Shown: positions 8,374-55,238, numbered from the stretch's first letter. The stretch: DNA of 64,000 bases from Lepidodermella squamata (GCA_047495785.1 JBLDXI010000017.1:1116001-1180000); one strand, 5' to 3'. A program made the numbers and translations. Notes: generated from the sequence alone by a model not told the origin.

Positions 8374-8836
8374 ATTCGGCCTTCAATACCAATTTTTAAT
8401 TTGTCGTTTGAAATGAATTTAATTCGCATTATAAGACAAAAATTTATCCGTATGGCTAAAGATTGGGCATAATTTACATTTTAATTTCTGATAAGGTCGA
8501 CTGTCACTCGAAGTGGCGGGGACAAAACAGAGGCGACCTTGGCTTGTTGCCCTGGTTCACCGAATGAACCGAGCTGCTTAGAATACTGTTAACAGCTTCG
8601 GAAACCATCCCCCACTAAATGCTGTGGTTTCTAAAGTGTTTGTTTAGAGCTGAGGGTATTTTAATTCGTTTTAAAATGATTTCATGCGTAGTAATTGAGC
8701 TTCACGATCAGCTGATGCCGAGATACAGCATGTTATACAACATATCTTGTGCTTTATTAGATTGCCGTGGATCGATATTTGTCTTTAACTTTCGTCGTGG
8801 TCTTGATTCATGCAGTTTTGAATACTTCAATCGATT

Positions 8837-11311
8837 ATGGAACGTAAGCGCCCGAGTAACAAACTTATGGGCGAAACTAGTTTTGATGTCTCGGAGAAGA
8901 AACCTTCGCGTAAAGGTGGGAAGAAGAACTCGTCCCGACGTGGTGGCCGTCGAGCTAATAGATCTAGTGGAGATGATGCATCATCAAATTCTAACGGATC
9001 GACTGATGTGATACCTCCTGCTGGCGGAAGACGAGGGAGTTTCACTGAGAAGGGCGAAAAGAGCGAACATCGGGGGTCTATTGGCATCCGTAGTCCGGAA
9101 AAACAAGTTATCAAAGACAAGGAGAAAGAGAAAGAACTCGCAAAATCAGCCAAAGAAAGCGCGGAGCATGTCGTCGAGCCCTCTGATGTTGCGGGTCTAG
9201 AAAGCGCTTCATTTCTTAGTCGCCTTGCCTACGATAAGATGACACCGTTAGAAATCGAGTTTTTCCCAGACCTTCAGGCTCCGCTTGCCGCTTTGAAGTC
9301 CTATCTTTATATCCGCAACAAAATTCTCTTGTTATGGATCGAGGGAACAGGCCATCAGTTGTTGTTGGAAAGCGTTATACCCCACTTAGAGGCACCTTTT
9401 GCCCAAGACATCAACCTAATAAGGCGAATTTTCAACTTCCTCGAGCGCCAGAGCCTCATTAATTTCGGTATTTTCCGCGTCTCTCGGCCCCTCAGACCTT
9501 TGAAATCAAATCGCTCAGTTATTGTTCTGGGGGCTGGAATGGCTGGTTTGGGCGCTGCTCGCCAATTGGCTTATTTCGGATTGGACGTAACGGTTATTGA
9601 AGCTAGAGACAGAGTTGGCGGAAGAATTGAAACCTACCGCAACGGTGAGTATATTGCTGACTTGGGAGCAATGGTTATCATGGGTCTCGGTGGCAATCCG
9701 GTTAACATCCTCAGCCGACAGGTTTATATGGATCTTACCAAAGTTCGCCCTAAGTGTCCATTGTATGACCACGCCGGAAATGTTTTGCCTCGACACAAGG
9801 ACGAATTTATTGAACGCGAATGGAACAAATTGCTCGAAGCTACGGTAAGATTAATTTGCTTCTTCTAAATACTGATTACATGCTGATGTTTTTAGACGTT
9901 CTTGTCGCATCATTGCGGATTCAATTATTTCGATGGAAAACCATTGTCCCTGGGTGAAATGATGCAGCTGATTATCATGCTTCAAGAAAAGCATGTTATG
10001 GATGTCCAAGCTGTCCATCAGCAGTCATTAAGTCGTTTGTACGACCAGCTTGAATCACTTCTTCACAAAATGGTCATACTCAGAGACAACATTAAGAAGA
10101 CAAGCTCAGATTATCAGGAGCTGAAATCTCGTTGCAATGTTGAATCTACACATTCCAACTTCTCTACTTGTTTCACAAAAGACGATTTCTTGCTACGGGT
10201 CAAGCGAATTGAGCTCCAAACTAGCATGCAAGAGTACGAACAACTTGAGCAGCAAGTTTCGGAGATGGAACGTCGCATCAAAGACCTGGAAGATCGCCCA
10301 CCGCCAGATCAATACCTTTCAACTAAAGATCGTCACGTTCTCGAGTGGCATATGGCTAACCTTGAATTCGCAAATGCAATTCCTCTCGATCAGTTGTCAC
10401 TCGCTCACTGGAGTCAGGATGACGAATACGAGTTGAAAGGAGCTCATCTCATTGTTAAGAACGGCTATTCCGTCCTGCCTACAGCTATGGCTGAGGGTTT
10501 GGATATCCGTTATAATCATCGCGTCTGTCGTATAGTGTACGACGATCGAGAGCAAAAAGGCGTTCAAATCGTTTGCATGACCCCCGAAGGTGAAGTGAAG
10601 TCATTAAAGGCCGATGCTTGCCTATGCACCATCCCACTTGGTGTTCTCAAAGAATCGATTGCGGCTACCAAACAGACTTTCGATGTAAAAGGTTCATTGC
10701 CGGTTGACGACTGCGATGGGCCGCCAATTTTCTACCCGCCTCTACCTAAATGGAAAACAGATGCGGCTGAAAGATTGGGCTACGGAAATTTGAACAAGAT
10801 AATTTTGTGCTTCGAAAACGCGTTTTGGGACACTAGTATTAACATTTTCGGCCACATAGCTGGTAATACCGCACCCCGTGGTGAATGCTTCCTGTTTTGG
10901 ACTTGCTGGGGCGCCCCAGTATTGCTGGCTCTGGTTTCCGGCGAGGCAGCTGATGAGATCGAAAAGGTTTCAGACGAGGAAGCAATTTCACGTTGTATGA
11001 AAGTTCTACAAGGAATTTTCGGTGAAACTGCGGTACCTCAGCCGATTAGCTCTGTTGTAACCAGGTGGCGGGAAGATCCGTTTGCCAGAGGGTCGTATTC
11101 TCACATCGCTGTCGGTTCAACCGGGGATGATTATGACATTATGGCGGCACCGGTGGGCACGGAAGATGATTGCGAGACGAAACCCCGGCTGTTTTTTGCC
11201 GGCGAGCATACAATGCGGCAATACCCGGCCTCGGTGCACGGCGCCCTGCTAAGCGGGTATCGCGAGGCTGGTCGAATCGCTAATCTTTTACTCGATAATG
11301 ATGAGGCGTGA
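8837..11311 (+). CDS. KDM1A: Lysine-specific histone demethylase 1 (LSD1)
   Basis: SWIRM domain, FAD-binding VIVLGAGMAGL...EARDRVGGR, tower coiled coil, and C-terminal FFAGEHT...ASVHGALLSG. Single intron 9845-9895. Confidence 0.97.
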
Positions 11312-11481
11312 ATTTGTGTTTTTATAGTCATAAACTAGCTGCTTTACTATGATTCATTCCACACACTTTGCTCAGAATAACTCTTGTCCATAGACAGTAA
11401 ATATGTTTATTATAACCATTATTATTATTAAATTGTCTTTTCGTATTTTTTGCTGTAGAGTTTATATCGATTTTTTATTAA

Positions 11482-14400
11482 ATGGCGAACAGCGACTTTT
11501 TGGCCGAGAATAACATCTGCGGCCAAAATTTACTGCGAGTCGTTTCGTTCGGAAATGCCGTGATCGCTGAGCTGTTGCGCCTCGCCGATTATATCCCACC
11601 GGTTTTTCGCGGCGACCCGTCCGCGGCTGGTTTCAACAAGTACCGCGAGGTCATTTTCGACTTTGACTATTTCAGCCAAAATCGAGCCATTTACGAGAAC
11701 AAGATTTCGTCGAAGCCTGATTTGCTAGACATTGACGAGGAGTTCAAGGAAAATTTCATCGATATTTTAACGCGATTTTACGTCGCCTTCGAAAGTATTT
11801 ACAAATATGTGACTGATTTGAATCGCTACCTCGAAGAACTCGAAGAAGGAATTTACATCCAACAAACGCTGGAGACTGTTTTTCTAACCATGGAAGGCAA
11901 ACAGCTACTGGTAAGAGCTCTTTCAATATCTAAAGGATCATATTGCTTAAAGCATAATTTGAAATTTGATCCACCTTAATGAAATGTTGTTTGTCATTTT
12001 TTTCCAGTGCGAATCGCTGTATTTGTACGGCGTCATGTTGCTAATCGTTGATTCGAAAATACCTGGACCTGTCCGCGAGCGAATGCTAGTTTCTTACTAC
12101 AGATACAGCTCTCACGACGCTGCGACTGATTCGAATATCGTCGACGTTTGCAAGCTGCTTCGAAGCACTGGCTACTCGACGGAACCAGGCGCGAAACGCC
12201 CGCCTAATTACCCGGAAAATTTGTTTTCGCGAATTTTGATCAAGCAAGAATTCGTAACTATGGTCATTGGCCGGTTGAAATCCGACGACCTGTACAACGC
12301 TTCGACTTACTACCCGTACCCGGAGCACCATTCAACCGCCGTTGCTCCCCAGGCTTCAATGCTATTCGTCACTCTGTTTTTCGACCATCGCACCTTGCAA
12401 ATTGAACATGCGAAAATGCGAGAGATTGTGGATAAATTTTTCGCCGATAATTGGATTGTCAATATCTACATGGGCCTAACCGCGTCACTGGTCGACTCAT
12501 GGCAGCCGTATGAATCAGCGACGAAGGCGATGATAAATACCACGGAAACTCGAACAGTTTCTTCAGTCGTTAAACGGCACGTTGAAAAAATCAACGAAGT
12601 GCGGCCGAAATTGGACCAAGTCCTTAAAGAAGGTGTTTTACGCGATGATTACGTTTTGGATAACATTAACCAGCTGATGAATTTGATTCGGGATTGTAAC
12701 GTCTGTATTCGCTGGTTGATGCTACACACCGCGAAATTAACGCCCGGGGCTGATGTTAACAAACGTTGCATTGCCCTGCGTGAGCAGGTTCTAGCCGAGT
12801 CGAAACTACACTCATCGGCTATTCTAGTCCTGCTGCTTTCGACTGCTCAGTTGGAGTTGAGACTTCGCCAAATTCTTGAGCGGCTGCTTTCGGAAAAATT
12901 AGACCGTTGGACAGCTGGGAAGAAGGAATGTATCGATCGAATGGTTGAGCTGGCTGAGGTCTTCTCAGGCACGAAACCGTTGACTCGAGTCGAAAGAAAC
13001 GACCATTTACAGGCCTGGTTTATGGAGATGAGTCGCCATTTAGCCGGGTTGAACCACGAGGACTACATTGCGGCTGGTCGAAAAATTGCGCAAATCATCC
13101 AAGCGCTGGAAGAAGTTACCCAGTTTCACAGTTTAGAGACAAACATGCAGGTGAATCAATTTTTGGCTGAAACTCGAAAGTATTTGCATTCGATGCTGCG
13201 GACTATCAACATTAAGGACGACCATCTAACTACGCTAGATCGCTTGTCTGACATTTCGTACGCGTGGCAGTTGATTGCTGATTTTACGCCGTTGATTCAG
13301 AATGAAATCAAGCGAAATCCGCATGTTGTCAAACGCCTGCGAGCTGTTTTCATCAAGTTATCTGCCGCGATTTATCGCCCGTTGATGCGAATTGAAGAAG
13401 CTGGTAGTAAAGATTTGGAATTCGTTTCGAAATACTACAGTAACGAGCTTGTTAGGTAAATTGTAGTAGAATTTTAAGGAGGAGTTTTCAATATTTTCGA
13501 CTATTTTTGCAGCTATGTCCGAGGCGTTCTGCAAATCATCCCCGAGTCAATGTTTCAAATTATCGAACGCATCATTGTGATTCAAACGCAGAAATTGAGA
13601 GAATTGCCGACTCGGCTCGATAAGGATAAATTGCGAGAATTCGCTCAGTTGGACGAACGACATGAAATTGCCAAATTAACACACGATATTTCAACGTTTG
13701 CTGATGGCATGTTGATGATGAAGAAAACACTGATTGGTATCATTAATGTCGATCCGAAAAAGCTGCTTGAGGACGGTATTCGAAAGGAATTGGTCAAATT
13801 GGTGAGTAAATTGACTATAGTATAGCATTTATTTCGAGAATGATGGTTATTCACTTTGACCTGAAATTTGATGTTAAATTCACGCTGACTCGCTGAATTT
13901 TTATTTTTAATTTTCACGAATATTAAATTTTTTTTTAATAATTTGTAAATACGTTTTAAAGGTTTCTATCGCGTTCAACGAGTCGTTGGTTTTCAACCCG
14001 AAAGTTCGACCTTCAGAGCTTCACGCGCGTCTTCAAACTCTAGCAGTTCGAATGGATGGTTTCCAGCGTTCTTTCGAATATTTACAAGACTACGTCGGAA
14101 TTTACGGCCTGAAAATGTACCAAGAAGAGTTGTCCCGCATCATTGGCTTTAATATCGAGCTTGAATGCAACTCGTTTCTGCGGACGAAAATTCAAGAATG
14201 GCAGTCGATTTACCAGTCAAAGTCGATTCCTATCCCAGTTTTCCGGCCGATAGGTGAAGATACGCAGTCGGTAAATTTCATCGGCCGATTGGCTCGTGAG
14301 CTGATTCGAGTCACTGATCCGAAATCTTCGATTTACGTCGAGGAAATGCGAACTTGGTACGACTACAAAACGCGACTAGCTGTAGCAGAGCCGTCGCTTT

Positions 14401-15592
14401 TCCAGAAAATGGAAAAAGGAGTCGGCGTATTCTGCCTAGCCGGGCTCGACCGTTTCATGGGTTTCATGATTGTTCGGCAACTTCAAACCATTTTCCAGCA
14501 TTTGGAACGTTCGATTTTCAGATCGGGTGAAGTTGCGACGAAACGATCGGCGAATATTGAAGAAGCCGCCCGAGCCCTTGGGCAGTTTGCCTCGTTTTGG
14601 AGTGACTACGCCTCGTCGCCTCATAGCTCGAATATCAGCCCAGATATCGCCTCGAAGTCTTACGGCCAGGCCGCGTCCCGTTTGGCGAATGAAATCGCAC
14701 CGCTGATTGATGGCGTCGTTAAGGTGGGCCAGTTGCAATTGCTTCGCATGCAATTTCAGTTCCAGCTGTACAACACGTCTCGTTTCGAGTCGAAACTACT
14801 CGCCGGGGCGTTGGAGGCGCTAAATGAGGCCGTGTTGACCGAAGCCCGCAGCCGGCCGTTGCCGCCAGAGAGTGATTTTGTGTCCGAATTAACGACTTAC
14901 CTCGAATCGACTGGTATGACAGATCCGTTGGAGAAAATCTACGTGACGAGCCGGGCTTATCCTCGTCTGCCTCACCTTCTAGCCGTTTGCGTTTGGTCGC
15001 TGTTGTCGAAATTTGGCTTTTCAGCCGGGGCTGGCGTGTTGATAGCGAAAAAGGCGGCTTCGAGCTCTGATGCGACTGTCGACGCATTGCCATTCGCGGT
15101 TGGATGCGCGACCGTGTTGAGGCAGCTGCATCCGAGTTCGATGGAAGTTTTCGCCAAATTGTTGTGCCATTTCGCCTCGGCTAGCACTTTGCCTACTCCT
15201 CCTCGAAAGTGAGAATTTTAGAAAGTTCAATTCTTAAACATTTTTCAAATTTGTTATTTTTGAAAAATTGGATTTAATTCTGATTTTCAGTTTCGAAAGA
15301 TGGACTGATATTTTGAAAATCACCAAAATGCTTATTTCGAGTTAAATTTCAAATTTCAAATTTGAATTTGAATTTAATTTCTTGAATTTGAGATTTTTTA
15401 TTAAATTTGATTTAATTTATTTTCAGTAATGTTCCAGTAAAGGCGCCCGTCATATCTACGGAAGCTATGTTGGCGCTGGTTTTCGCCGACGAATTCGCAA
15501 ACGCTTCCCGTTTGGACCGAAAATTCATGGAAGATGCTGTTCCTTCTTACATTCTATGCGCTTACCGGACTCAGCTGGAAAGCTCAGTCTAA
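11482..15592 (+). CDS. WASHC5: Strumpellin, WASH complex subunit 5
   Basis: N-terminus [30 protein letters not shown], plus [14 protein letters not shown] and [15 protein letters not shown]. Five exons; the last (15427-15592) is in frame. Confidence 0.96.
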
Positions 15593-15859
15593 CACAACTC
15601 GCATTCCGTTAAAATATATTAATTTTAGTTGTGAACAAAATCCATCTTAAAAAATGGTAAAACTGCGCAATATTTTCAATCGAGTGCTTACATAAAAAAA
15701 TGCTTGTTATTATCACGAGATGAAAGAAAACGATGATTTGCTATTATACCTACCTATTGATAATTACACCGTGATTGAAGGGCTTTCAAATTCTATCGAT
15801 AAAAACGCGATTTAATTATCGTTGCACTTTTTCTCTAGATAATTTACTTCAATTTTTGT

Positions 15860-18689
15860 ATGGGCAATAAAGAATCAGTTTCAAGCGGCAAAAACCGCCA
15901 TGCCTCGGGCGACCATTCAGGCAGCGCTTATGGCCCGGCGACTTTCGGCGGAGGCCGATCGTCAGCTACCACGCCGCCGCCAGCTCGCAGTTCGCGGCAC
16001 GTCAGCGAAAGTGATAGCCCCTTCCCGATGTCTCAACCCTCGACGCCCGGCGCATTAGGCCCGCCGTCATTCAACACAGCAACGACGCCGTCCGGTAACC
16101 ACTTGTCAGTTTCACAAGCGTCATCCGTCGCGAGCACGGGCCCGGCGAATAAGCTGTTCATGCCGCCGGTGATTGATGCCGACATCGAATTCGACCCGGA
16201 GCGGTTTGGCCAGAAGAGCGCGGGTGAAATACCGCGATTTCGCACGTCGACCATATCCGAGGGCACGCGGATAGACAACAAGAAGCTGCCGTCTGTGTTC
16301 AAGTGGGACGGCCACAACGTGCGCGAGGTGTACATTGTTGGGTCTTTCAACAACTGGAAGGCTAAAATTCCGCTGCGCAAGTCGCAGGAGATTTTCTACA
16401 CGATCGTCGACTTGCCAGAGGGCGAGCACGAGTACAAATTTCTCGTCGATGGCCAGTGGAAACACGACGAAAGTCAGGTTAGCTCAACGCTACTACCTAA
16501 TACTTGTAACTCGAAATTTTGGGGGACTATTCAAAGTTACGACCATGAAGAGTAGAGAGAAAGGAATTTTTTGGAGAAATATCGAAGCGGTCAACATTAC
16601 CGCTACTTGAAAAAATATATTGGTTGGGATGGACAATATTTTTTTCTTAACTGAACGCGAAATTTAAGATTTGTTGACGTTTAGGGCAACATTTTGGTTT
16701 GATGCAAAAACACAACCAACCCTAATTGAAAAATTGATCGATAATGCTTCATAAATTTTGCACTTTGCACATTTACGTGACCTGGAACTTCCTTTTGGCG
16801 AAACGAAAGAATGGATCGGACTAAAAAATATTCAAAAATTATCTCTTTGGACCGGTAGATGATTTGGATGGCCTTTAAACTGCGAAGTTGAATGAATGAA
16901 AAGTAAAATGGGTTTGATAATTTTAGTTTCCCCTAAATTTCTTAGTTTTATTGTTGTCTCACACTATTATCCAAATTGAAAACGCCGCATTCTGCAGGTT
17001 TTAGGATGTGCAGCAATTTTAATTTTGACCCAATTTTTCTTTCAATTCAAAAAGCCTTCCTCGCCTCAAAATATATGGCCTAATTAATATTAATAAAGGT
17101 CTCTAAAAAATGAAAATTGCTGATTTAAGAATTCGTCAAATTGTTTAAGACAAAACTATGGGTTCCATTGTGGATGTTGTTTCCCTTTCAAACCCCTTTC
17201 AAACATTCCCTTTGACAATGTTTTTTTTACTATATTAAACAATTTGACACATCAATATTGAAACTGAAAAGAATTTTGGGAAAATCTGAATGCGGTACCA
17301 ATGCTTAATTAATTAATTTAATTCAATACCTATATAACCATTTTATTCGGTTATTTTACCGGCCAGGGCTAGGGTTAAGTTAGGTTTAGAGGCTGGGTCT
17401 GGAAATTGCGGACTTCGAACTGATTGGAATAATTTGGTACAGAATTCAATAATTTGGTAATGAATTCACTATATCCCAAGAATTTTTATTGTAATTTTAA
17501 ATTTATCTCTAATTTTTGTTCATTTTTTCAGCCCCACCGGCCTAACAACTATGGTTCTCACAATAACACGATTTCTGTGAAGAAGACGGATTTCGAGGTG
17601 CTGGAGGCGCTGGCAATCGATAGTCACAACAGCGCTGCAGCGGGCACGCCAGCAGCCACAGGTCGCTTATCTTCTGTCAATTCACAATCATCACCCACTC
17701 CACCTTCAAGTTCTTTAACTGCGCCATATGGCGGTACATAAAAAAGCGGGAATAAGTTGAAATAAGCGCGACAGCTAGCATGACAAGAAACTATAGCACA
17801 CGCGCTCTAAATTTATGTTGTGTGGTGATCCCCCCAACTCACTCAATCACTACTCATTTGCCCATTAATTTTGTTCGCCTTGTTGTGCTAATTTCGTGCC
17901 GTAAAATTCATTCGTTCACGCCCCAAGCTTCAAGGTAACAGCCGTGCAAAAAATATTATGTCCCTCTATTTTCGACTCCGCGCCGCGCCGAACAGGAAAA
18001 ATGTACTGCACGACCTTTGTTTTTAGCCTTTTTCAAGTAATCTTCTTCCGTTTTCTATGCGAATGGGCTAACTTTGATAGACTTTTGGCCTGTTACCTGT
18101 TGTTTTGTGAAATTTAATTTGCACTGCTTAAAAGTTGTGTATTTTATGTATAACCATACCCGAAATGACTCAATTGATGCAAGGACGAAACAAAAAATTG
18201 AAAATCGAAAAAATGTGTTTCCTTCCTGTTCAATTTCAAGTCATACATGTCCCAAGAAACTAACGTTGAATGTGGGATGATTTTTTTGTATTATTGGCTA
18301 ATTTATTTTTTAAATTTCCAGGTACCTTCGATAAACCAGAAGAGTTTCATCAAAGAGTGCCGCCGAAGCTTTCACTCGAAAAGGGCAATCCGCCCACACT
18401 GCCGCCTCATTTACTTCAGGTTTGTGAAAAAAAATTCGCAAAATAAAGGAGGATTTTTTTTAATTTTTCAATTTTTTTTCTAATTTTACATTTCCTAATT
18501 TAGGTTATTCTGAACAAAGAAACCTCGGAAGAATATGACCCATCGTTGTTGCCCGAGCCGAACCACGTGATGCTCAATCACCTCTACGCGTTGTCGATCA
18601 AGGACAACGTGCTTGTGCTAAGCGCCACGCATCGTTACCGCAAGCGATTCGTGACGACTCTTTTCTACAAGCCGATTAGCAGCTCTTAG
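15860..18689 (+). CDS. PRKAB1: AMP-activated protein kinase beta subunit (PRKAB1/2 family)
   Basis: MGN myristoylation start, carbohydrate-binding module (VYIVGSFNNW...YKFLVDGQW) and C-terminal PPTLPPHLLQVILNK...LPEPNHVMLNHLYALSIKD. Exons 15860-16477, 17532-17661 (or about 17733), 18322-18419 and 18504-18689. Confidence 0.95.
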
Positions 18690-20612: not shown

Positions 20613-23600
20613 TCAACGACGGTTCATGTCAATTGCACCCAGGGCAAGACGCGGACCGGCAAGTCCTCCGTTGCGGCGGCGGCGCGGCAGTCGACGTGGC
20701 TTTTCGCCCGTAGCGGTTTCGTACGGATAAATGTAGACCTTGTAATCCTTGGTGGAAATGGCCACAGAACGACCGCCATCGATCAGGCAACAGTCAAGAA
20801 CGCCTGGAAATTACGTTTCAAAATTTCGGTTTTTAAAGTGAAAAATATTTACCCGCATGTTTCACCTCGCTTTGGTAACCACGAAGAACCTCGCCAGAGA
20901 GTCTATAAAATTTTCAGATGATAGAAATTCCAAAATGATTAAAAATCTTACGTGAGGATTGTGATGTTGAATGTTTCGTGGTTATCACAAACAACAAGTT
21001 CTCCTCGGTGATTGATGTCGACGCCGACAGGATACATGATGTAGTCGGTACCCGGGTGAATGATGTTGAGCAATTTGCCATTGTAGTTGTACACCTGAAA
21101 ACAAACAATTGAAACGACATATGACCTATGAATGAACATCGTTAAAGCCGCAGAATTCATAAACAAAATTAGGTACGGCCCTAAAACGAGTCGAATGAGT
21201 GTCTCCCACTGACCCTGCTATTGCTTAGTTTTTGTGTTGTTTTAAAGAGCGCAGCTTTCGCTTTAGCGCCCTGAGACCAGCATCAGGTGATGGTGAGGAT
21301 ACATACCTTAGACACAAATTAAATTCGCAGATGGTTAAATGTTAAACGGACTTCAATTCCGACCACCCTCTGCAGCACAACTAAACTCAACTCTACGAAT
21401 ACATCAAAATTAGAGAACGATAAAAATTCGCTTTTACATAACATTAAGACCGCGCGTTGTCAAGCACTTGTTGTACCAGTAGAAAAATGTATAATTAATG
21501 TCGCTGAATTCGAGTAATTGGACATAAAAACTATTTGCCTCAGTTTGGCAATGACCTGTCTTACAAAATATGAACATATTCAGCCTTATGCGCTTAGCAG
21601 CAACCACTGAATTTACCTTTCCACTCCACCACAACAACCAAAGTTCAATCTGAAGAGTTTACATTAGGAGCCAGTTAAGAGGGAGCAAAGAACGTAGGAT
21701 AGCGAGCATAATTAACTGAAAATCGGCATCTTTTCACCCTTTTCTTGTAGGGTACAAGATGGTATAAATATAGATATTTTTCACGTTTTGTTTAGAGCGC
21801 GTAGTGTTTGACTCGGCGCCCCAAGAACCCAGAAAATAGTCAAAAAGATGGAATGAAACAAGACAACGAGATGGAAGATAACGAATGAAAACAACCAATT
21901 TCGTTTCTTCTTGTGTATTTTCGTTGTAAAGAGCGCAGCTTTCGCTTTAGCGCCCTGAGACCAACATCAGGTGATGGTAAGGATACATACCTTAGACACA
22001 AATCAAATTCGCAGATGGTTAATTAAAATGTGGCAAAACTTTTAACCGCCCGCTGAAATCTGATATCAATCAATCTATCGCATAGCTCTAAAAGGCATGA
22101 TGTTGATTATAGCATTGCAAAGAGCATGCATATACTGCTGCTACTGGAATGACATGCAAGAGCATTGTTAGAAGGAGGTTAAACACTCTTCAGGATCGAG
22201 CATGTCCGAAGTCTCATTCAAACTCCGCCTCCTGCGAGAAAATGAATTGAAATGCATTCCTGATTTTCTTCGGCTAAATGGACGCTTTGACTCTGGTTAG
22301 GTCTTCGACTGATAACCCGTCATTCTCGACGACTAGTGATATTCAGGAAAATTTCGATCAGTACCTTTTGCCTTCATTTAACGCAGCAAACACGAGAACG
22401 AGAGTTGATGCCCTCAAAATGAGGAAAGAAATCGAAACAGCGCTGACGCTCTTCGTGTCAGTCAGCAATATCAGTATTTCTTGATTATTTAGTTTTAAAG
22501 AGCGCAGCTTTCGCTTTAGCGCCCTGAGACCAACATCAGGTGATGGTAAGGATACATACCTCGCTCACTATGTCCCGTTCGCCCAGCCTTCGCGCTGCTG
22601 CTAGCCTGCACCCCTGTCTCAGGTGGTTTGCAGTCTGTTGTAAAATACGATAGCTGTTACTATTAGACAACCCACATAAGTGGCCCGGCCCAGTTAACCT
22701 ACGGGTTGGGGCCTTGTGTATTTTCGAATTTTCCGACAATAAACCTTAGACACAAATCAAATTCGCAGATGGTTAAATTTGAATACGACTATTTTTCGAA
22801 CCGACCGCTAAAAGCTTGTATCATTAAACCTAGCGCATTGCGTCGAGTATATCAGTATGTTCAAACGCGATCGAACGAGGAAGCGCTATCACGCCGGCAC
22901 GCAGAGAGGTTTACTGTAAGGCAAATGGTAGGTTAGCAAAGTAAGCGTGAATTGAACGCCGAACTTTTGTGACTCTATTACAGCTTTATTACATGCCTAA
23001 AGGTTTAGCATGGACAGCTCTGAAAGGCCTCGGTGCATGCCAAACACGCTAACTAATATTCTTCGATTTGTAGCCAGATTCTGCAAAGATTGACCACTCA
23101 ACCAAAATATCAGCGTCATGCTATATCGCTCTCGTCGTTTAGCATCTGAGAGGAGAAAAGGTTCGAAACATTTTGAATTACTTATTGAAAGTGAATTCAC
23201 GTTTAGGATTCAGAATTGTTAATTTAGCGAATTAGTTAATTACAAATAAACTGCGACGCTAGCGCTGACGCTCATAAGTCGAAAAATACTGAAAGTAATC
23301 AAATACACGTCTAACAGGCGCGAACGTTTTGAATTCTGCTTATGTTTTCGGTTTTAAAGAGCGCAGCTTTCGCTTTAGCGCCCTGAGACCAACATCAGGT
23401 GATGGTGAGGATACATACCTTAGACACAAATCAAATTCGCAGATGGTTAAAGTTAACAACGACGGAATTGTCAACCGGCTGCTGAAAGATGATACCATTA
23501 GACGCAGCGCATGATTGCTTTTGAGCAACGCTCGTCTAGCAGGCCATTCAAGTCAGCTGTCCATTGACTACAAGTTTCAATTATGTAATAAGCTGATGAA

Positions 23601-26600
23601 AACTAACGGAATACCCAAGGTGCGATCATTTACATTGTTGATGTAGATTAAGTGATAAGTGAACAGTGAAAGTTACGAATCAGTATCGTACATCACTCCC
23701 CCATCGACATCACTCGAGTGATCTCGGAAAAAGTTGACTAGAGTGATGTCGATGGGGCCAAACTGCTTCGATGTGATAACTGCTGTAGCTGAGTGTCAAA
23801 AGAGCCATTAGATCCACCTCGAATGAAGGCAGAGTCTAGCAGCAGCATGCAAATACCGTTTACCGTTTACCGAAAACGCCTTAATGCAGCAAGGTATTAA
23901 CTAAATAGCCGCCAAAACACAAGTGAGCGATTTGTTATTGATGGCCGAAACGGCCACAATGAGGGGAAAAATCGTAAAAGCGGCAACGCTTGTTAGAGAT
24001 ATATAGGATTCTTCGACTTTTTCAAGAATTAAAGAGCGCAGCTTTCGCTTTAGCGCCCTGAGACCCACTTCAGGCGATGGTGAGGATACATACCTTAGAC
24101 ACAAATTAAATTCGCAGATGGTTAAATTTCAAATTGACATAAAATCCAAGCGCTTTCTAGAGGACCACTCCGATGAATAGTACGAATAACTCGAATTAAA
24201 TGAGAAGCAGGAAATCGGTTTTGGAAGCACCAAGCCTACGCATTATCAATCATGTGTTGCGGCACTACGCTAACATTTCAACCGTTTCGCTAAAATTTCA
24301 GTACAAAGTATACAACCTGATCAATCACACCGAAAACGTTTTGCAATAAATTATTCACTAAAATATTCTTACCTAATTAAAAATGGGCCAGCTTCAAGTT
24401 AAAAGGGGTTTTCAAGTAATTTTCGTCATAACCACGTGGCGTCCGATTGGAAGCTCTGACAACCTGGACTGAAGTTACCTGGATGAGTTACAATCCAGCA
24501 AGGTACTAACGAGTACGTGAAATAAAAACCGTCAAAACTGCGAGATAATGCGCGTTACAACAAACTCAAAATTTCAAGACAAACAAAAGATGGATAGCTA
24601 CTAGAGATTGTGCTTATTTTATATATTTCTTATTTAAAGAGCGCAGCTTTTGCTTTAGCGCCCTGAGACCCACTTCAGGCTATGGCAAGGATACATACCT
24701 TAGACACAAATTTAATTCGCAGATGGTTGAAGTTACATGGTACCCAATTTCCACCCGCCCGCTGTGAGGTGATATTATCAAACCCTAATAACTGTCTTAA
24801 TTTACGCAATTATCATTCGAGTCATTTCATAGGAGACAAGCCAGTAAAGCAGCGGACTAATCTTTGATAGCTGCTGCTGACGATCAGACAATCAGATAGC
24901 TAAGTTGGAGGGAAGTTGCGAAACAAATGCGAGGGGGAAAGAGCGGATGGAAGAATGTCAAGCGCAAAATTAGGCGAATTCCGACTAAAAAATAGTTGAC
25001 CTGCTACGCAATCAAAAAAAATACAAAGCTTGCCATACTGCACGATGATAGAAAAGGCGGTCAGCTCAATCCCAAGCTTTAATCCTCCACTACTAAATCT
25101 AATCAACATGGATGAAGAAACATTTCACCCGTTACCAATTACCAAACAATGTATTGGTCCCAAAGAAGAAGAAGAAGAAGAAATAACTGGAATATATCTA
25201 AACTTCGTTGATTTTCGCAAAGCTAGAAAATGATTTTTTCTTGTTTCCTTATATTTTAGATTTAAAGAGCGCAGCTTTCGCTTTAGCGCCCTGAGACCAA
25301 CATCAGGTGATGGTAAGGATACATACCTTAGACACAAATCAAATTCGCAGATGGTTAAAGATGAAAAGGACCCAATTTTCAACCGCCCGCTGAAATCTGA
25401 TATCAATAAATCTATCGCATGGCCTCAAATTCCACAATACTTTCAATATCAGGCAATATGATAAACTCAGTGCGGCGGAAAATATTTTCCGAATGGATGG
25501 AATGCAAGGGAATAGCACAAAAAGCGTAGAAGGGATATGACATCCTACAAATCAGGATTACTCCTCAAGTTCGACTCTTCTTTCATTCGTGAGGCGGGCA
25601 TCGAAGAAATCATTTAGTTGACAGAATTATCAAAATGTTGGAGATGCCTGCAATATTCAAGATCGCATTTTGCCTCGTGTTTTTCATTGGCGAAATAGAC
25701 GCTATGACACACGCCACACGCTTACCTATCTACTGTTAAAGAAATAAATTTACTACTCCTAATTCGCTTTCTGCTCAAACGCATCAGTCATCACCAAAGC
25801 AATTATCCATCATTCACGATCGAGTTACTTCCATTATCTTTGCCATTAAGGTGGCGACATGAAATCCAGCATAAGGGCGTGGAATAGCGACGCGCATCGC
25901 AAATCGTATTTTGGTTTTTCCTTTTATTTATGGGTTTTAAAGAGCGCAGCTTTCGCTTTAGCGCCCTGAGACCAACATCAGGTGATGGTAAGGATACATA
26001 CCTTAGACACAAATCAAATTCGCAGATGGTTAAATTCTACAATGAAGGAACTCTTCAGCGCTTGCTAAAAGCTCAGATCATTCAACTTAGTCCACAGAAC
26101 AAGAAATATGATATGCCTTAAATGTTGAGAAGAATCAACTTCCCGGGATTTAATTTTAAATACGACAGATATTAAAATAAAATTGATACGAAAGCTCGCT
26201 GCTTGCGAGAGCTTGATGATAAAAATTATCAAAACTGATAGCCATAAATCGGAAAAATCAAGCACTAGGCTAAAATTAGATGAAATTGGAACTTACGAAA
26301 ATTGAGTTTTTAGTGTTGTCGGCAATGAACACCTGCTTGTCACGGCTGACGCACATAGCAAACGGGAAAGTCATGCTCTCCTGGGCGGACTGACTCAGGC
26401 AAGTGAAATGGTGCAGCCGTTTCCCGGAAGGCGAGTAGACCGAAACAGTCATCACCAAACCTTGAAGGACAACAACATTTCCGTCCACGTCGACGCAAAT
26501 GCCGCGCGGGTGCTGGATTTCGTCGACAGCAATGCGTCGAACAAACTGGTAGGACGAATCGAACACCTGAATGAGTTTTAGGGGCGCGCGCTCCGTGATA

Positions 26601-36969: not shown

Positions 36970-37248
36970 GGTCGATAAATTAATGTATAAAAATTTGTCA
37001 GCTGGATACTAAAAATGTTGAAAATGACAGTAGGTATATTGGCACTGTTGTTGATAATTGTAAGCCTGGTTACTGGCATATTAGACATATAAAATTAACA
37101 GTCATCTATGTTAAGGTGACTAACTGATAAGTATCCGATGAAACAAGGGCGGAGATGAGGGAAAGTTGTACTAAATCCATAACGCCATATTGATGTGAAT
37201 TGAAGATGGTTGTCAGGATTTGTTGATTTTTGACGCCGGATAACAACC

Positions 37249-38212: not shown

Positions 38213-39012
38213 CCAGACATGGATCGACAAAACTTGTCGCCAATCGTCGCAAATATGGAAAAGATTTTGATGGAAAGAACCGATGGCGCGAAGTTTAAAT
38301 TTAAAATAGAATATTATGTTAAATACAGTCTATATTATTATTCTATCGCATTTCAGATTGCCATTAAAAAGTTTTCACGGCCGAATGGAAAGCCCGCGTC
38401 CAGTGATTTGCCGATCGAACAGATGGCTGCCCACACCGCATGACGCCGCCTGTCCCCGAGATGAGTTAGCAAGTCGTTACGGGTCGATCGTATGTTATTT
38501 CGTCATTACCTCGTGTTGCCACATGCTTCGCAATCAGCATCACATGTTCTTTTGCCAATGGCGCATTTTCGGAAGTCGGAGGCTGGAGACTTGATGCAGG
38601 GCCATAGATTGTTTGAACTATCAATTCTCAATTGATTATATGCGCTTGTTAGCCGCTTTTTATTCCTTGAAATCGACTTCCAGTTGGGACCAGTTAACGC
38701 CAAAGTTGCGCACTTTGTCCGCGTGTCCGGTGTAAAGTGTCAGTAGACACATTTTACCGATTAAGTATGACAGCAAGGTGAAGTCTGTTTGGTCCCTAAT
38801 CCTTTTCTCTCGTATTAGGATCTAGCTATATTTATTGGATTCCAATAGCTTGCCCTTTCTTTTTTTTGCAAAATTCATGGGAACTACTCCTCTGAGACCG
38901 TTCCATTACTCGCCCTTCCATTTGAGCTGGTTGCACCTGTACCAAAGCTTAATTTTGTTTTCATTGTAGATTTAAATTTTCTGATAAAAGCCTCAAAATT
39001 GCTCCAATAAAG

Positions 39013-39813
39013 ATGCCACGTGACTCGCCCGCCGTTATGGTGCCAGAGCTTGAGGCATTCAAGGAAAAATGCAAAATAGACGCGGAAGCTTTGGTCAAAG
39101 ATGAGTTTCCGAAGAAAATATTGTCACTTCAAGCCTTGATTACTTCCGACAAGTTTAATGTCAAGCGCCTCAATGAAGTTGGTGGTATTGACCTCGGCAT
39201 TCCGGTCCCTAGTGCGGTGTCAGTTGACCAATGTTGCTCGGGGAAGCGTTCAAAAGCGGAATCCGGCGACGCTAAAGGAACAGCAGTTCACGCTTTCACT
39301 TGTGGAACTGTCCCAATCAATCCAATTTTGGCCGAATTGGTTGACATTGTCAAACCCGAGTCTCGTCAGCTAATTGACTTTTTAAACTTGGTTTGTTTTT
39401 TTTTCAAAATATTTACTGATCCACTAATTACTTATGAACTTGCATACTTTCAGATCAAGATGTGGATCACCTTCCTAATTCCCAGAATCGAAGATGGTAA
39501 CAATTTTGGCGTCGGTGTTCAGGAAGAGACTCTCGGCCTTGTTACTCAATCAGAGCAAGACGCCGCTACTTACCTCGATCAAATCTCGCGTTACTACTTG
39601 AATCGCGCTCGCATCGTTGCCAAAGTGGCCAAGTATCCTCATATCGAAGACTTCCGCAGGACCATTCGCGAGTTGGATGAAAAAGAATTCGTTTCTCTGC
39701 GCCTCATTCTTTGCGAGCTCAGAAATCAGTATTCTTCGCTGCACGACATCATCCACAAGAATCTGGACAAGATCAAGAAGCCTCGTACCGCTCACAGTGA
39801 TCACCTGTTTTAG
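39013..39813 (+). CDS. PSME3: Proteasome activator PA28 gamma / REG-gamma
   Basis: KMWITFLIPRIEDGNNFGVGVQEE, RIVAKVAKYPHIEDFR and ELRNQY...KIKKPR. 63-nt intron 39391-39453. Confidence 0.95.
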   Translation: MPRDSPAVMVPELEAFKEKCKIDAEALVKDEFPKKILSLQALITSDKFNVKRLNEVGGIDLGIPVPSAVSVDQCCSGKRSKAESGDAKGTAVHAFTCGTVPINPILAELVDIVKPESRQLIDFLNLVCFFFKIFTDPLITYELAYFQIKMWITFLIPRIEDGNNFGVGVQEETLGLVTQSEQDAATYLDQISRYYLNRARIVAKVAKYPHIEDFRRTIRELDEKEFVSLRLILCELRNQYSSLHDIIHKNLDKIKKPRTAHSDHLF

Positions 39814-40099
39814 AGGGTCTTAGTAATCGTTTTTCGCGGTTACCTGAAAATCCCAGTGTCACAATCGTGTGTAATTTTCAGCAAATCTGTTGCAGAGCTA
39901 CTGTAGATAATTTGTAAAATGGCTCTTTCAATCAGTTCCGTTCCATCTTTTCTGGTGATGTTACGTTTCTAGATACCTATAAGCATTTTACTGTCATTGT
40001 GTCGAGTATGCGTGCGTTCAAAGATTTACTGGTAGTAAATGACAAGTCGCTCAAATAATCTGTTTCTCTTTACTGTAGGGTTTGTTAATAATAGTAATA

Positions 40100-43000
40100 A
40101 TGGCTGAAAGTCAGGAAGAGATGCGTCAAAAACGGTTGGCTCGACTGCAAGCTATGGAAACATCCACTTCAAGGGTTGAGGCAGTATCGCCCGTATCGAA
40201 TGTTAGTGCCATGGAGTTGAGCGACGCTCCTCAAAAGATTGCACGAACCATCCAGCCCGAGGTAGCCAAAGTTGAGCCTAATGTGGAAATCATTGACAAA
40301 CCGAAGTCTCCTCAGCCCGCACCGCCGCCAAAACGAAACGTTGATCCAATGGAGGCATTCTTTCGAACAACTGCACAAATCTTCGAAGCTAACCAAGCTG
40401 ATTTGAGAGCTGGGTTTGCTAATCTGGATCCAAACAATGCGAATCATGTCAAATCGATTGCTCAACTCGCAGTATTTGCTTGGATGTCCACGAAAAATAA
40501 ACAACTTCACCTGTCCGAGGAGCTCGTGGAGCTTTGTGAGCCAAATTTAAGGAAGGACGTCGAAATTCTTCACTACTTTGCTTGCTGCTACAATCGCTGC
40601 ATGGAGTCTACTTACGCTTACGACAACTGCAAAAGCGTGATTGCGAGTAGCATTTTAAATTATACTCTCTTGCTGGTTAATGGAGGATTGACTAATACAC
40701 CGTTCAATACACTGGCGTTCTATTACTTGTTCAAGGAGAAAATAATCAGCGGTGACTTTATGCTTCAATTATTGTCACTAGTTCCGAATCCGAAGCTGAT
40801 TGACCAAATTTGCCATCCTATGTTGAAGAGACTGGCAGTTATTGTGTCAGATGCTACTCTGTCAAATCAGTCATTCCGACAACCTGTTGAGATTTTATCC
40901 GAGTTGTGTGGCTTGAAATTTCATAACAGTAATGTTCGGCCATTTTGTTCCTCGATGGTTCGCTTGGACAATTGGCAACCCGAGGCATTTACCAAAGATC
41001 ATGGTGATGACCTCAAAGCAGCGCCAGGGCGTGAAATTCAGGTTTTATCGTATTTGGGCCCATTTTTTTCGTTGTCACCGTTCGCCGAAGACGACCCAAC
41101 GATTTTGTACGACTGCTACGCAATCGACGAGCCTAGCCATGCCCAATTGAACATGACTAGTGCAGGTCTGGCTCAGAACGCAGAAAATCTACGACGTCAT
41201 TTACACGAAATCATCCACTGCTTATTGGTTAACGCCGAATCTCGAAATGCTACGCTTAATTACATTGTTCAAGTGTTGGAGCGATCTTGGAAGAGACGCC
41301 AGCACTACTTCGACTATCGTGTTGTTGCTAGTGATGGTTTCGTCCTGAATTGGCTTTACGTTCTGCAGAAATTGTGTGTGAAAATTAAGGTGGATAAAGT
41401 ATCGAAAGACTACTTATGGCATGCAAAATGCCGTATCGGGCAGCTAATTCAAACGGATGACGCTAGGATTCGATTCAACAAGCAAGAACTTGAACAATGG
41501 CTGGCGTCTAGGCCTCGGACTGCCGAGGATGAGGTTGATCCTACTTTTTCAACGGAATGCTTTTACCTGACAGCTTTTGTCCACCACATCGGTATTGTTT
41601 CTATCATCCGCCGTTTCAATAACAGGCGACGAGCAGTTCATGAAATCAACGATATGATCGCCAAGTTGGAGAAAAAAGTCGAGGAGGGTGGTCAATTGAA
41701 TAAGGAAGAAACTCGCCAGCTGAAATTAGCCAAGCTAGAGCGAAGCGCTGTGAAACGAATGGGTCTTTCTATTGGTGGGGCGTTGAGCGATCCGTGTCTC
41801 ATTGACCAAACTGTTCAATTCCTCAACACTTTCTGCTCTTTCCTGCTATCGTACATCTTTCCCGACCCGAAAAACGTGCCCTCGCAGTTCAACTCAGTCA
41901 CAGCTGCTGATTTGCCTGCTAATTTCCGTGCATTGCCTGAATTTTACTTCGAAAATATTGCCGAATGGTTGTTCTACTACTCGCGTGTTCACCCGGTGGA
42001 ATTGTCTCAATCAATGGTTGATGACATCATTACGTGGTTTACGCTGTTTTTGAGCAACACTTCGCTGATCAAAAATCCGTTTTTAACCGCAAGGCTTGTG
42101 GAAACTCTGTTCATGCTATGCCCAATGAACCCTCGCTACCCAACCGAGCGACTTTTCACGACTATCGTTATGGCTCCGATTGCTTTGAACGGCCTCGTTC
42201 CTTCTCTGATGAAATTCTACGTTGATTGCGAGTTGACCGGATCACACACGGAGTTTTTCGACAAATTCAACATTCGTTACCACATTTCGGTGATTTTCCG
42301 TCAAATTTGGAATTTGATGGAGTACAAAACTGCTATCATCAACGAAGCGCAAACTGCTTGCACGATTGGCTCGCAGTCTGTTTTCGTCAAATTCGTAAAC
42401 ATGCTCATCAACGATTGTACTTTCTTCCTCGATGAAAGCATGCAACTCTTGAAACGAATTCATGAAATCCAAGAACTGCAAGCTAACGAAGCTGAGTGGA
42501 ATAAGCTAAACGAGGTAATTAAATTTAAAATTTTCAATAATTAAGGTGGAATTTTGAGTTTTTAAATTTGATTACTTATTTTTCGATTTATTCCAGGAAG
42601 CGAAGAAAGCAAAGAGCGAGATTTTGGCTCAAGATGAGCGAGTCGTCCCGCAATATTTGAATTTGGGCGATGATAATCTTCGAATGTTCGGCTATTTGAC
42701 AAAAGATGCGAAAGAAGCCTTCCTTGTACCGGAAATCGTCGATAAATTAGCTGCGATGTTGAACTACAACTTGTCCCAACTGTGTGGTCCTCGCTGTACC
42801 GAGCTGAAAGTTCGAAATCCGGAAAAATTTAGCTGGAACCCGAAGCAGCTACTGGAAAGACTCATTCAAGTTTATTTACATTTGGACTGCGAAAAGTTTG
42901 CTAACGCGATATCAAATGATGAACGGTCCTACAATGATGAACTATTCGGACGTGCTCATTTCCGCCTGCTTAAAACCGGGATTTTATCCGGTGGCGAGAC

Positions 43001-43370
43001 CGAACAATTTCGCTTGCTGGGTGAACGTGTCGTTGCATTGAATAAGGAACGAATGCAGGAAGAAATGGACCTTGGCGAACCTCCAGAGCATTTCAAGGAC
43101 GCTTTGATGGACACTTTGATGTCAGACCCGGTGCAACTTCCTTCAGGCAAAGTTTGTGATCGCTCTATCGTCACTCGCCTGCTACTCGACCGTCCTGTTG
43201 ATCCTTTCAACCGACAAGAAATGACCGAAAATGACCTTATTTCACGTAATTTTGTCTGATTTTCGTAAAATTTGGCTATAAATATGTGTTATTTAGTGCC
43301 GGAGTTGAAAAAGGAGATCGAGGAATGGATCAGGGCGCGAAAGGCAGATCTTCAGCAGCAGCGTTCATAG
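40100..43370 (+). CDS. UBE4B: Ubiquitin conjugation factor E4 B (Ufd2) with C-terminal U-box
   Basis: [12 protein letters not shown]-terminus, [46 protein letters not shown] and U-box [14 protein letters not shown]...DPFNRQ. Three exons. Confidence 0.95.
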
Positions 43371-43569
43371 ATTTCCCATAAGTCTCATTGACATCTTTCG
43401 ATTATTCCGGAGGCAATTGAAATACACTCTTTCGTCTTAAGATATCTGCTTTTTTAACTGTTGCCTACCTAGAGGCTCTAAAATAAATTGTGACAAATTT
43501 TCGTTCTAATATAATATTTCTAATTTTTTAGACCTCATTAAATTGAAATTTTGGGGAAATTGAGGTCGG

Positions 43570-46500
43570 ATGGCTGTTCACATGCAGTCAAATGCTGTTT
43601 ACATCGTGCAGAGTGAAATTGTGCAGTTACTAACGCCGTTGAAGCGTTCGTTCAAGACTCAGACTCACGTCGATGAGGCTCAGTTGCCGCTTCTGAATTC
43701 GCTGCTGCAACTTCGAGACGTCCTGGCCAATGTCAGTGCTATTCATCAAGTCGATCTGAGCACGATTCTAGCTCCATTTCTCGACTGTATTCGATCTGAG
43801 GAGACTAGTGGACCAATCACAGCTCTGGCTCTCAATTCAATTAACAAATTTCTGCTCTATGGAATAGTCGATCCGAACTTGTATGAAATCAAACTGGTTT
43901 CTTCAGCGGTTTCGAATATTTCAAATGCGGTTAACCATGCTCGATTTGTTGGCGATTCCACATCCCAGTCTGATGAGGTCGTTTTTCTGAAAATTCTTCA
44001 AGTTTTGCGAACGCTTCTCTTCGTCAACGCGAGTTCACTGCTGACAGACGAAGACATCTGTGAATGCTTGCAAACGTGTTTTCGGATATGTTTCGAAGCT
44101 CGTTTGAGTGAATTGTTGCGAAAATCTGCGGAAAGTATCCTCGCAGAAGCGACTTTCATGCTATTCTCGCGGTTACCGTTTTTTAAGGAGGACGTCCGGC
44201 CTGATTCTAAAAAGTTGAAATTACGAACTGGGCTATTTGACGCCTCGCAAAAAGCGAAGAAGAAACCGACGAAAAAGCAATCGCCACAAATGCCGAAGCA
44301 CATGCCGCCTCGTTCTCAAACAATCGCTGACTTACCGGCTGGTCGTTTGACATCGGCAACTTCCACGCCGGACTTGACCAGCCCGGATTTTGTTATGGTC
44401 GGCCCGACTGATTTGGCTTCAGATCACGAAAAGGCTGAAACCAAGTCGGAAAATAACGACCACAGCTCAGCTGCGGATGCGTTATCAACTGATTCCGGTG
44501 TAGCTTCTAGCGAAAATCCACCTCAACAGTTGATTCCTAAACCACCTGTTGAGAGGGATCTGGTCCAAGAAAACGAGTCATACATGCTATCACCCTATGG
44601 CATTTCAACTGTTTACGAGTTACTTCGCTTTCTGATTCAAATCATCAATCCGTTGGATAAAAACAACACTCCTATGATGATTTCACTCGGTCTCAATCTA
44701 CTGACAATCGCATTTGAAACATCAGCTGATAATGTTTCAAATTCCAGGCCGTTGGTCATGTTAGTTCGCGAGGAGTTACTTAGGAACCTGTTGTTTTTCT
44801 TCTCATGCGACAACAAATATTCACTATTCGTCTCGGCTTTACGCCTCGGATTTTTCATCTACGAATCGTGCCGAACTTTTCTGAAATTCCAACTCGAAAT
44901 TTACCTGCAAAAATTGTTTCAGCTCATCACAAGTGAAAGCGGCAAGGTCAGTTTCGAGTACAGAGAAGCCGCCCTTGAGGCTGTGGTGGATCTATGGCGA
45001 GTCCCGGGTTTTGTCGCCGAGCTATATATCAATTACGACTGCTCGTTGTTGAGCTCGAATCTTTTCGAAAAAACCACCGAAATGTTGTCGAAAAACGCGT
45101 TTCCGCTTCACGGCCTATTCAACACGAATTTGATTTCTCTCGAAGCTCTGCTAACAATCATCGACGGAATTGAAGAGCATTGTCTATCGAGAATGTTGAA
45201 CGCTGTTGGGGATAATTCGATTTTCGGGGCGAATTCAGGTGGACCAGCAGCGGTTAGCGCCGCAGCGGCCCGTTCGACTATTCAATGGCGACTTTCTCGG
45301 GTGAAATCAACTCGTATGCCGTCGTTGGATGAACTCCTTCAAAACCGGCATAAAAAAGCGTTGTTGCATATGAGCATTGAAGAGTTCAACAAAAAGCCGT
45401 CGAAGGGCATTGTCTTCATGCAAGAGCATAAACTCATCTCCCAGAATGCGACTCCAAATGAAATTGCCGCGTTTTTGAAAAACAACCCTGGTATCGATAA
45501 AAAGGTCTTGGGTGACTACATCGGGGAACGGAAGAACGCGGCGATTTTAAAGGCTTACGTCGAGCAATTCACCTTTGAAAATGTTCGGATTGACGATGCG
45601 CTTCGAGTTTTTCTCGAGTCATTCCGTTTACCTGGTGAAGCGCCTGTTATTGCTTTAATCATGGAGCAATTCGCCGAGGCTTACTACAACGCGGCCGGCC
45701 AGCAGCAGAATTTTGCTAATAAAGACTCGGCTTTTACCCTCGGCTATGCGGTTATCATGTTGAACACGGATCAACACAACACAAATGTTAAGAAGAACAG
45801 TTTACCCATGACGTTGGAGGACTTCAAGAAGAACGTCAAGGGTTGTAATGGTGGTGGTAATTTTGACGAGGAAATGTTGACTGAGCTGTACTACGCGATT
45901 AAAACCGAGGAAATCATCATGCCTGAAGAACATACTGGTCTGGTTAAGGACAAATACCTATGGAAAATGGCTCTTCATTACTCGATGGATCCGGCGAAAA
46001 GCGAATTTCTCCACGTCCATCCGCCTGGTTTGCTCGATAAAGAAGTTTTCCTGCTCGCCTGGCGGCACATTGTCTCGGCGTTGAGTTATGTCTACGACAA
46101 AACCATCAACCCGTCGATGATTCAGAAGACGTTGAGCGGTTTCAGGAAATGTGCGTTGATATCAGCGCATTACAATTTGCACGAGGTTTTCGACAATTTG
46201 CTCATCACGCTATGCAAGTTTACCAATCTTGCCCCGTCAACTGGCGCTGGCTCAGCAGCTGCGAATTCCGCTACTATGAATTCCGGAATGGGCGCAGAAT
46301 CAGGTAATAAATATCTGAAAATTCCCGATTTTCGAAATTGACAAAAAAATCGATTAGGTATCATGTATTGAAAAATGGCTAAAATAGTTATTTCAAAATT
46401 GGAGATGAATTTTACTGATGGGCTGGAGAAAAACTGAAAATGACTAAAATATATTATAAACTTTTGCTTTAAGGTGGAGAACTTGTTGCGGTTACTCTCG

Positions 46501-54527: not shown

Positions 54528-55238
54528 AGCGACTCAACGAAAGTATTCGCTCGTCGTCTCATGGTTATATATAGACCTCTCTCCATGTCAGTCATTTTCT
54601 GGAGGAAAAACAGAAACATGGAAAACACAGGTGATCTGGGTGCATTACAGGCGCTTTTTATGTTCGAAAAAACGGAAAAATATGTAAAACAAACTGGTCG
54701 TGGTGATTTCATGGTGTTGTGGTCATTTATTCTGAAAAGCAAAGCTTGAAGTCAGTGTAATATCAACAAAAATTGTCATTCCTTTTTGTGTTTTACTGCG
54801 TGAAAGAAGTAAAATATCAAATAATAAAATGCACTTCTGAAAAATTTATTGTGGAATGAAAAATATTATATGGGCTATATTCTTGTAAACTCGTCGAGAA
54901 AATCAGCGACCAATTGAAGAAAAACTGGACGAAAAATATTTCGGAATTATCTATTGTTATGATTTAATTTATCTGTGACTTGATGCAAAACTTAATATTA
55001 AAATGTGTACTAACTCCAGCTATTATCATGTGCTTGCTCCGGAATATCTATGATTTAAATGAAAATTAATAACTTATATAACATGTAAAAGGCCGAATAC
55101 CGAGGGCATGTCGCATATATAAACGTTATACTTGTCAAGCGAATGAAAGATGATAAATTATAATGATCTATTCCAGCGAATAAATCGCAGAATTTGATGA
55201 ATTTTTTCATTTTCCTAGCTGGTTAATTTATTTTTTAA

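Follow-up and report, generated by a model that had tools for sequence, protein, structure and literature searches.

A cluster of eight near-identical 93-nucleotide (nt) units, on the minus strand of a 64,000-nt stretch of JBLDXI010000017.1 (1116001-1180000; hereafter the window, from whose first letter all positions are counted), is probably a set of spliced-leader (SL) RNA genes. We consider this the best-supported reading of the locus: each unit opens with an AUG-less leader that ends at a donor like those of the host genome itself, has its own upstream box, and is conserved within sharp bounds; the unit matches no Rfam family, has a homologue adjacent to a 5S ribosomal RNA (rRNA) gene in another organism, and occurs in a genome whose start codons are preceded by an excess of splice acceptors. 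A first-pass annotation, made from the sequence alone, had proposed this array as the donor locus for SL trans-splicing in the organism. All of the sequence-level tests that we ran fit that proposal, with one element wanting—the canonical Sm site is missing.

SL RNAs are non-coding, about 45-150 nt long, multicopy, and often clustered, and the eight units, together with further copies elsewhere in the genome, have these properties. All eight lie where the first-pass annotation had placed them: 21244-21336 (copy 1; leader 21307-21336, loop variant UUA, Sm-like AUGCUGG, 119.4 bits with a model of the unit), 21928-22020 (copy 2; canonical sequence, 121.5 bits), 22497-22774 (copy 3, which is interrupted), 23356-23448 (copy 4), 24031-24123 (copy 5), 24636-24728 (copy 6), 25264-25356 (copy 7; canonical), and 25939-26031 (copy 8; canonical). 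Copies 5 and 6 form a type B with the middle AAGUGGG; the leader loop is UUA in copy 5 and UAA in copy 6, where the terminal loop is AAAA. Start-to-start spacings given by a repeat finder are 684, 569, 859, 675, 605, 628, and 675 bp, and the whole array fits within 4.8 kb. A 36-nt pattern of leader plus donor and a 28-nt pattern of the 3' hairpin each match eight times in the 64-kb window, only in the array, compared with no matches in dinucleotide shuffles of the window.

Copy 3 is split; among the other seven units, which are intact, identity is 92-100%. Conservation starts abruptly at AACC and stops at CUCUUU, and the spacers are mutually unrelated, as had been described, save for some 35-65 nt directly 5' of the leader. 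Sharp boundaries set among unrelated spacers imply that the 93 nt and a short upstream box are under selection. The RNA sequence originally quoted for the unit is exact in copies 2, 7, and 8, and also in copy 3 after its halves are joined across an insertion of 185 nt. The array itself contains no tRNA and no open reading frame (ORF) longer than 93 aa, and a covariance model of the unit (R1) found no additional copies in the window or in the contigs of its relatives.

Each unit is built of a 30-nt leader without AUG (AACCAUCUGCGAAUUUGAUUUGUGUCUAAG; 5' end AACCAUCUGCG, 3' portion ...GAUUUGUGUCUAAG / ...UUUGAUUUGUGUCUAAG), the donor AAG|GUAUGUAUC, a variable middle, and an invariant 3' hairpin (GGGCGC-UAA-AGC-GAAA-GCU-GCGCUC, then UUU). 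The putative mini-exon is directly followed by a consensus GU donor: AAG|GUAUGU stands after 30 nt in all copies and in the homologue of an uncultured relative that is discussed below. Cis-introns of the window, mapped with the proteins of two syntenic metagenome contigs (L001 and L007) that also served to fix start codons, have donors of the form AG|GUAAxx and, once, GUAUGU; the unit donor is therefore a normal 5' splice site for the host genome, in agreement with the earlier description of an AUG-less leader ending at a consensus site. All eight copies also share a box, YAG-N2-RG-Y-G-S, at about -36 to -27. On the minus strand, the alignment places the box zones at 21361-21386, 22045-22070 (CAGCGGGCGG, copy 2), 22799-22824 (TAGCGGTCGG, copy 3), 23473-23498, 24148-24173, 24753-24778, 25381-25406, and 26056-26081, and the homologue has AAGTGGCGCA at equal distance. 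This arrangement fits one promoter per unit, with the function of the box being predicted.

The predicted structure of the unit is consistent with the minus strand as the RNA. In the consensus fold, a leader hairpin pairs positions 9-14 with 18-23, and its loop is the sole site of variation in the leader; a three-pair helix between the 5' ACC and G|GU spans the splice junction, and an extended 3' hairpin comes next. Folds of single sequences place the donor inside a UAAGG/CCUUA hairpin, while the homologue places it in a CUAAGGU/ACCUUGG helix enclosing an extra small hairpin—in both species, the donor is predicted to sit within a helix. The orientation assigned in the first-pass annotation holds up, given three invariant G-U pairs, the GAAA loop, the donor consensus, and the upstream box; folding energy is -23.4 kcal/mol on the minus strand versus -18.6 on the plus, and the z-scores against shuffles are -1.35 and -0.61, respectively. 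It had also been claimed that nearly all differences between copies fall in loops or linkers. This stands for most of the variable positions (16, 17, 48, 49, 55-58, and 78), but a U42->C change in three copies disrupts an A-U pair of the donor hairpin.

The host genes offer candidate acceptors for such a leader. Most start codons have a T-rich tract and an AG 4-60 nt upstream, and the acceptor score at 19 ortholog-supported start codons from three genomes (the window and two syntenic relatives) is 8.9, as against 6.3 at random positions (Mann-Whitney p = 6e-7), 6.4 when the same windows are read on the opposite strand (Wilcoxon p = 0.0025), and 7.3 in shuffles. One predicted trans-splice acceptor, at 38955-38969 on the plus strand (TTTGTTTTCATTGTAG), ends 43 nt before the start codon of PA28; similar ones end at 8815 (KDM1A), 11458 (WASHC5), 15838 (AMPK beta), 40078 (UBE4B), and 43531 (Sec7), and for UBE4B the acceptor is conserved in L001 as well. 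The genes lie in tight same-strand clusters with intergenic gaps of 170-270 nt; WASHC5, for example, starts only about 170 nt after the KDM1A stop. Taken together, acceptors 5' of start codons and tight gaps fit outrons and operon-like clusters, as judged from sequence.

Homologues in uncultured organisms indicate which parts of the unit are held most firmly. When metagenome contigs were scanned for 22 nt of the leader, two loci emerged, L002 and L003, both linked to ribosomal DNA (rDNA). L003 contains a full 93-nt homologue (103 bits with the unit model) that is identical to the window consensus at positions 1-39 and 64-93 and differs at 16 of the 24 middle positions. A 5S rRNA gene is about 150 nt away from this homologue, and the 3' end of a large-subunit rRNA gene is also close by. 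L002 is an rDNA spacer with 5S, in which four tandem partial copies (2436-2586, minus strand) lie between the 5S and 18S genes of an uncultured organism. These consist of leader positions 8-30 plus GUAUGUAU only, without the 5' AACCAUC and the 3' half. The identities in L003 and the partial copies in L002 suggest that constraint is greatest on the leader and donor, as would be expected of a mini-exon and its splice site. Adjacency to 5S is a recurrent arrangement for SL genes, known from nematodes, Oikopleura, euglenozoans, and dinoflagellates. As a separate observation, the 18S rRNA gene of L002 (1-2004, minus strand; 1346 bits) is highly divergent for an animal, even in normally invariant stretches, and is about 200 nt longer than the model span; this is puzzling, as its organism shares an identical leader with an animal genome.

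From these data a mechanism can be proposed, in which transcription, the RNA ends, Sm binding, and trans-splicing are all predictions. Each unit is probably transcribed alone, from a promoter that would include the box some 27-36 nt upstream. The transcript would start at AACC and be roughly 93 nt long, with its first 30 nt (AACCAUCUGCGAAUUUGAUUUGUGUCUAAG) serving as the mini-exon. The spliceosome would then cut AAG|GUAUGU and join the leader to many pre-mRNAs, at AG acceptors between a few and about 60 nt before the start codon; transcripts of downstream genes in tight same-strand clusters would be among these. In the window, the predicted first exon bases to be joined to ...GAUUUGUGUCUAAG are 8816, 11459, 15839, 38970, 40079, and 43532, with a further one at 37008 on the minus strand for an unnamed 404-aa gene. 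The other 63 nt would be discarded as the intron half, which consists of the variable middle with its degenerate Sm-like AUGUUGG, followed by the invariant GNRA-capped hairpin.

Several observations weigh against the units being SL RNA genes. Criteria for Sm sites in SL RNAs are available (PMC7986045), and we looked for the AU4-6G type, 20-60 nt 3' of the donor and between stem-loops; no unit has a canonical AU4-6G site. The best candidate, AUGUUGG, lies 24 nt 3' of the donor in five of eight copies and varies elsewhere, reading AUGCUGG or AAGUGGG in other window copies and ACCUUGG in L003; the candidate thus appears right in position and degenerate in sequence. AUGUUGG itself has been reported as the Sm motif of one SL RNA type of the dinoflagellate Polarella (PMC12787238). 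The fold is another weak point: in the window copies, stem positions are invariant or changed on one side only, without any compensatory double change, and the z-scores are weak (-1.35 and -1.59), making the modelled structure plausible rather than proven. The 22-nt leader scan of metagenome contigs gave no mRNA-like contig, and three PA28 metatranscriptome contigs of relatives (L004-L006) begin 20-34 nt 5' of the ATG without the leader; the latter finding is uninformative, since assembly often loses 5' ends. Four more contigs with the PA28 of a relative are all metagenomic DNA. Lastly, the acceptors before start codons could belong instead to ordinary introns in 5' untranslated regions.

Searches against known families bear on what else the units might be. 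The first-pass annotation had proposed an Rfam scan as a means of excluding known small nuclear RNAs (snRNAs). Over the whole window at gathering threshold, no Rfam model gave a match, and over the array at E<=10 only two chance microRNA matches were found (E ~2); the nematode SL1 and SL2 models (RF00198 and RF00199) gave no match at either setting. The unit is therefore no curated spliceosomal snRNA, nor U7, nor SL1/SL2. Searched as DNA and as RNA in the full text of the literature, the leader returned only chance matches in unrelated papers, so that the claim of a leader unlike known SLs is upheld on both counts. In a literature search that asked for three or more of six terms, the single paper to mention spliced leaders together with gastrotrichs was an unrelated review of Euglenozoa. 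Two further candidates were rejected: a C/D-box small nucleolar RNA (the unit lacks a proper C box, and copies 5 and 6 have lost the motif) and a tRNA-derived short interspersed nuclear element, or SINE (no tRNA-like parts were detected).

In the main alternative, the units would encode a novel small nuclear or nucleolar RNA, multicopy and about 93 nt long, that stays intact as a ribonucleoprotein. The GUAUGU that follows position 30 would then be no used donor but a chance occurrence or a binding site for protein or RNA. A promoter-like box, sharp boundaries, and a stable 3' hairpin would suit any snRNA-type gene, and the leader carries the Sm-like runs AAUUUGA and GAUUUGUGU, the second of which resembles the Sm site of U1. 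We nevertheless judge this explanation unlikely: no Rfam family matches, positions 1-39, which close with a perfect 5' splice site, are the most strongly constrained across species, L002 retains partial copies of leader and donor alone, and the genome has an acceptor and operon signature that calls for an SL.

A strongly diverged family of U7-like snRNAs would share the small-RNA gene layout with a 3' hairpin, and the motif AUUUGUGUCUAAG, with hairpins following it, resembles the special U7 Sm site AAUUUGUCUAG. That identity is highly improbable, as the Rfam U7 model (RF00066) has no match even at E<=10, the 93 nt of the unit exceed the roughly 60-70 nt of U7, at least 14 copies are unusually many for U7, and AUUUGUGUCUAAG differs from AAUUUGUCUAG by two insertions, with the elements in a different order; moreover, the 5' end AACCAUCUGCG is no pyrimidine-rich sequence complementary to the histone downstream element (anti-HDE), and CUCUUU is at the wrong end. 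A non-functional or selfish repeat, whether SINE or satellite-like, with no role as RNA, is scarcely credible: the units are indeed multicopy, and one carries an insertion, but they are 92-100% identical while their spacers are unrelated, they have no tRNA-like parts and no poly-A tail or target-site duplication around them, and the full-length unit is conserved in a second species, where its genomic surroundings differ.

Read as SL RNA genes, the units can be compared with the SL RNAs of other metazoans, for which the surveyed systems include nematode SL1/SL2, flatworms, Hydra, rotifers, tunicates, chaetognaths, and copepods (PMC7986045). Shared with these are the small, multicopy, clustered gene; the short, AUG-poor leader ending at a GU donor; the donor within a predicted stem, with a 3' stem-loop after it; a gene beside 5S rRNA in the relative; and a compact host genome with acceptors just 5' of start codons. 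The differences are that the leader matches none of them, that there is no AU4-6G Sm site, and that the array spacers are not homogenised. For the rotifers, the 23-nt leader (GGCUUAUUACAACUUACCAAGAG) had no match within 3 mismatches in the window.

Flatworms, which would be the sister phylum if the host is a gastrotrich, show likenesses to the unit. Like theirs, the present RNA would be about 90 nt long with a predicted donor-holding hairpin, and its leader begins AACC and contains UUGUG. Structural criteria for flatworm SL RNAs are given in PMC12582326, and the Schistosoma mansoni SL is printed in PMC7986045. Comparing the latter with the present leader from the 5' end without gaps, we found 15 of 30 positions identical, a value reached by 39 of 5000 shuffles; a gapped alignment of the same two leaders was not significant (1784 of 5000 shuffles). 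Flatworm leaders differ in being about 34-41 nt long and ending in AUG, whereas the present leader ends CUAAG without AUG, and the long U-rich Sm-like site of flatworms, AGUUUUCUUUGG, is absent from the unit.

Other systems resemble the units in single features. Dinoflagellate SL genes are often linked to 5S genes. Their SL RNAs also have an unusual Sm arrangement, with U-rich Sm-like runs inside the exon and, in one Polarella type, an AUGUUGG Sm motif (PMC12787238); however, they belong to another kingdom, the 22-nt DinoSL is unrelated to the present leader, and AUGUUGG is found here in the intron half. U7 snRNA is likewise a small Sm-type RNA gene, and AUUUGUGUCUAAG is similar to its Sm site, but the unit differs from it in having no Rfam match, the wrong length, the wrong order of elements, and too many copies.

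Among animals, SL trans-splicing has a scattered distribution, and it is debated whether this reflects many origins or many losses. If the SL reading is true, a poorly sampled animal lineage joins those that use SL trans-splicing, and the debate would gain a data point from a bilaterian lineage not sampled before, with a new leader and signs of operon-like clusters. A more specific proposal, which we hold only tentatively and think rather doubtful as a whole, is that the units encode the SL RNA of a lineage without previously described SL trans-splicing or operons, possibly Gastrotricha. In this proposal the leader is unchanged in several uncultured relatives, the Sm site is degenerate, the gene of a relative sits in an rDNA spacer beside 5S, and the AACC...UUGUG leader and the flatworm SL may be of common descent; that would speak for trans-splicing in the common ancestor of flatworms and gastrotrichs over independent origins. 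In practical terms, the 30-nt leader could be used to fish full-length mRNAs of this lineage from mixed soil and freshwater metatranscriptomes, and could help to annotate true 5' ends and predict operons in the host genome. The degenerate Sm site and the rDNA/5S linkage of the relative are useful for comparing the evolution of SL RNA genes.

Copy 3 and the sequencing data show further features of the gene family. In copy 3, the intron part (22497-22559; 63 nt from GUAUGU on) is separated from the 30-nt leader (22745-22774) by an insertion at 22560-22744, all on the minus strand. The inserted 185 nt lie precisely between AAG and GUAUGU, at the AAG|GU junction, and are flanked by a duplicated AGGT, with which the insertion counts 189 nt. 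No second copy of the insertion is present inside the window. Run X1 (DNA contigs at about 97x, which carry no information on expression) includes a contig that matches the insertion from 22579 onward and then diverges, and the insertion is therefore probably a repeat with copies in other parts of the genome, and possibly an element targeting SL genes. In the same run, the summed depth over the commonest unit variant is about 15x the single-copy depth, and loose ends reveal other genomic copies of the unit, some of which combine an unchanged leader and donor with another intron. At one such loose end, at window position 24689, two DNA contigs have the leader plus GUAUGUAUC and then a different sequence (GCUCUUCUAGUAUUGUGG..., RNA sense), which suggests a second class of SL RNA with the same leader elsewhere in the genome.

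Protein searches with UBE4B, PA28, and KDM1A place the host among bilaterian animals, with identities of 33-51% to named animals and none above 51%; for PA28 and KDM1A, the named animals are about equally distant (42-51%). A rotifer origin finds no support, as rotifers are absent among the 120 proteins listed for each search. The nearest relatives were found only in metagenomes and in Joint Genome Institute (JGI) metatranscriptomes, whose samples we take, from their numbers, to be forest soil. The metagenome contigs L001 and L007 are syntenic with the window at 8815-18000 (kinesin, KDM1A, WASHC5, and AMPK beta) and 38900-57400 (TDP-43, an unnamed gene, PA28, UBE4B, a Sec7/GBF1-like gene, and GPAT), with 60-70% protein identity, and are almost free of introns: WASHC5 is a single ORF of 1138 aa in the relative and has at least two introns in the window. 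The ortholog of gene g255 of L001 (a GBF1-like TPR region) is broken in the window by about 1.7 kb (51497-53226) that hold a 175-aa ORF on the opposite strand (51996-52523); the interrupting stretch is an insertion or else a large intron with a gene nested in it.

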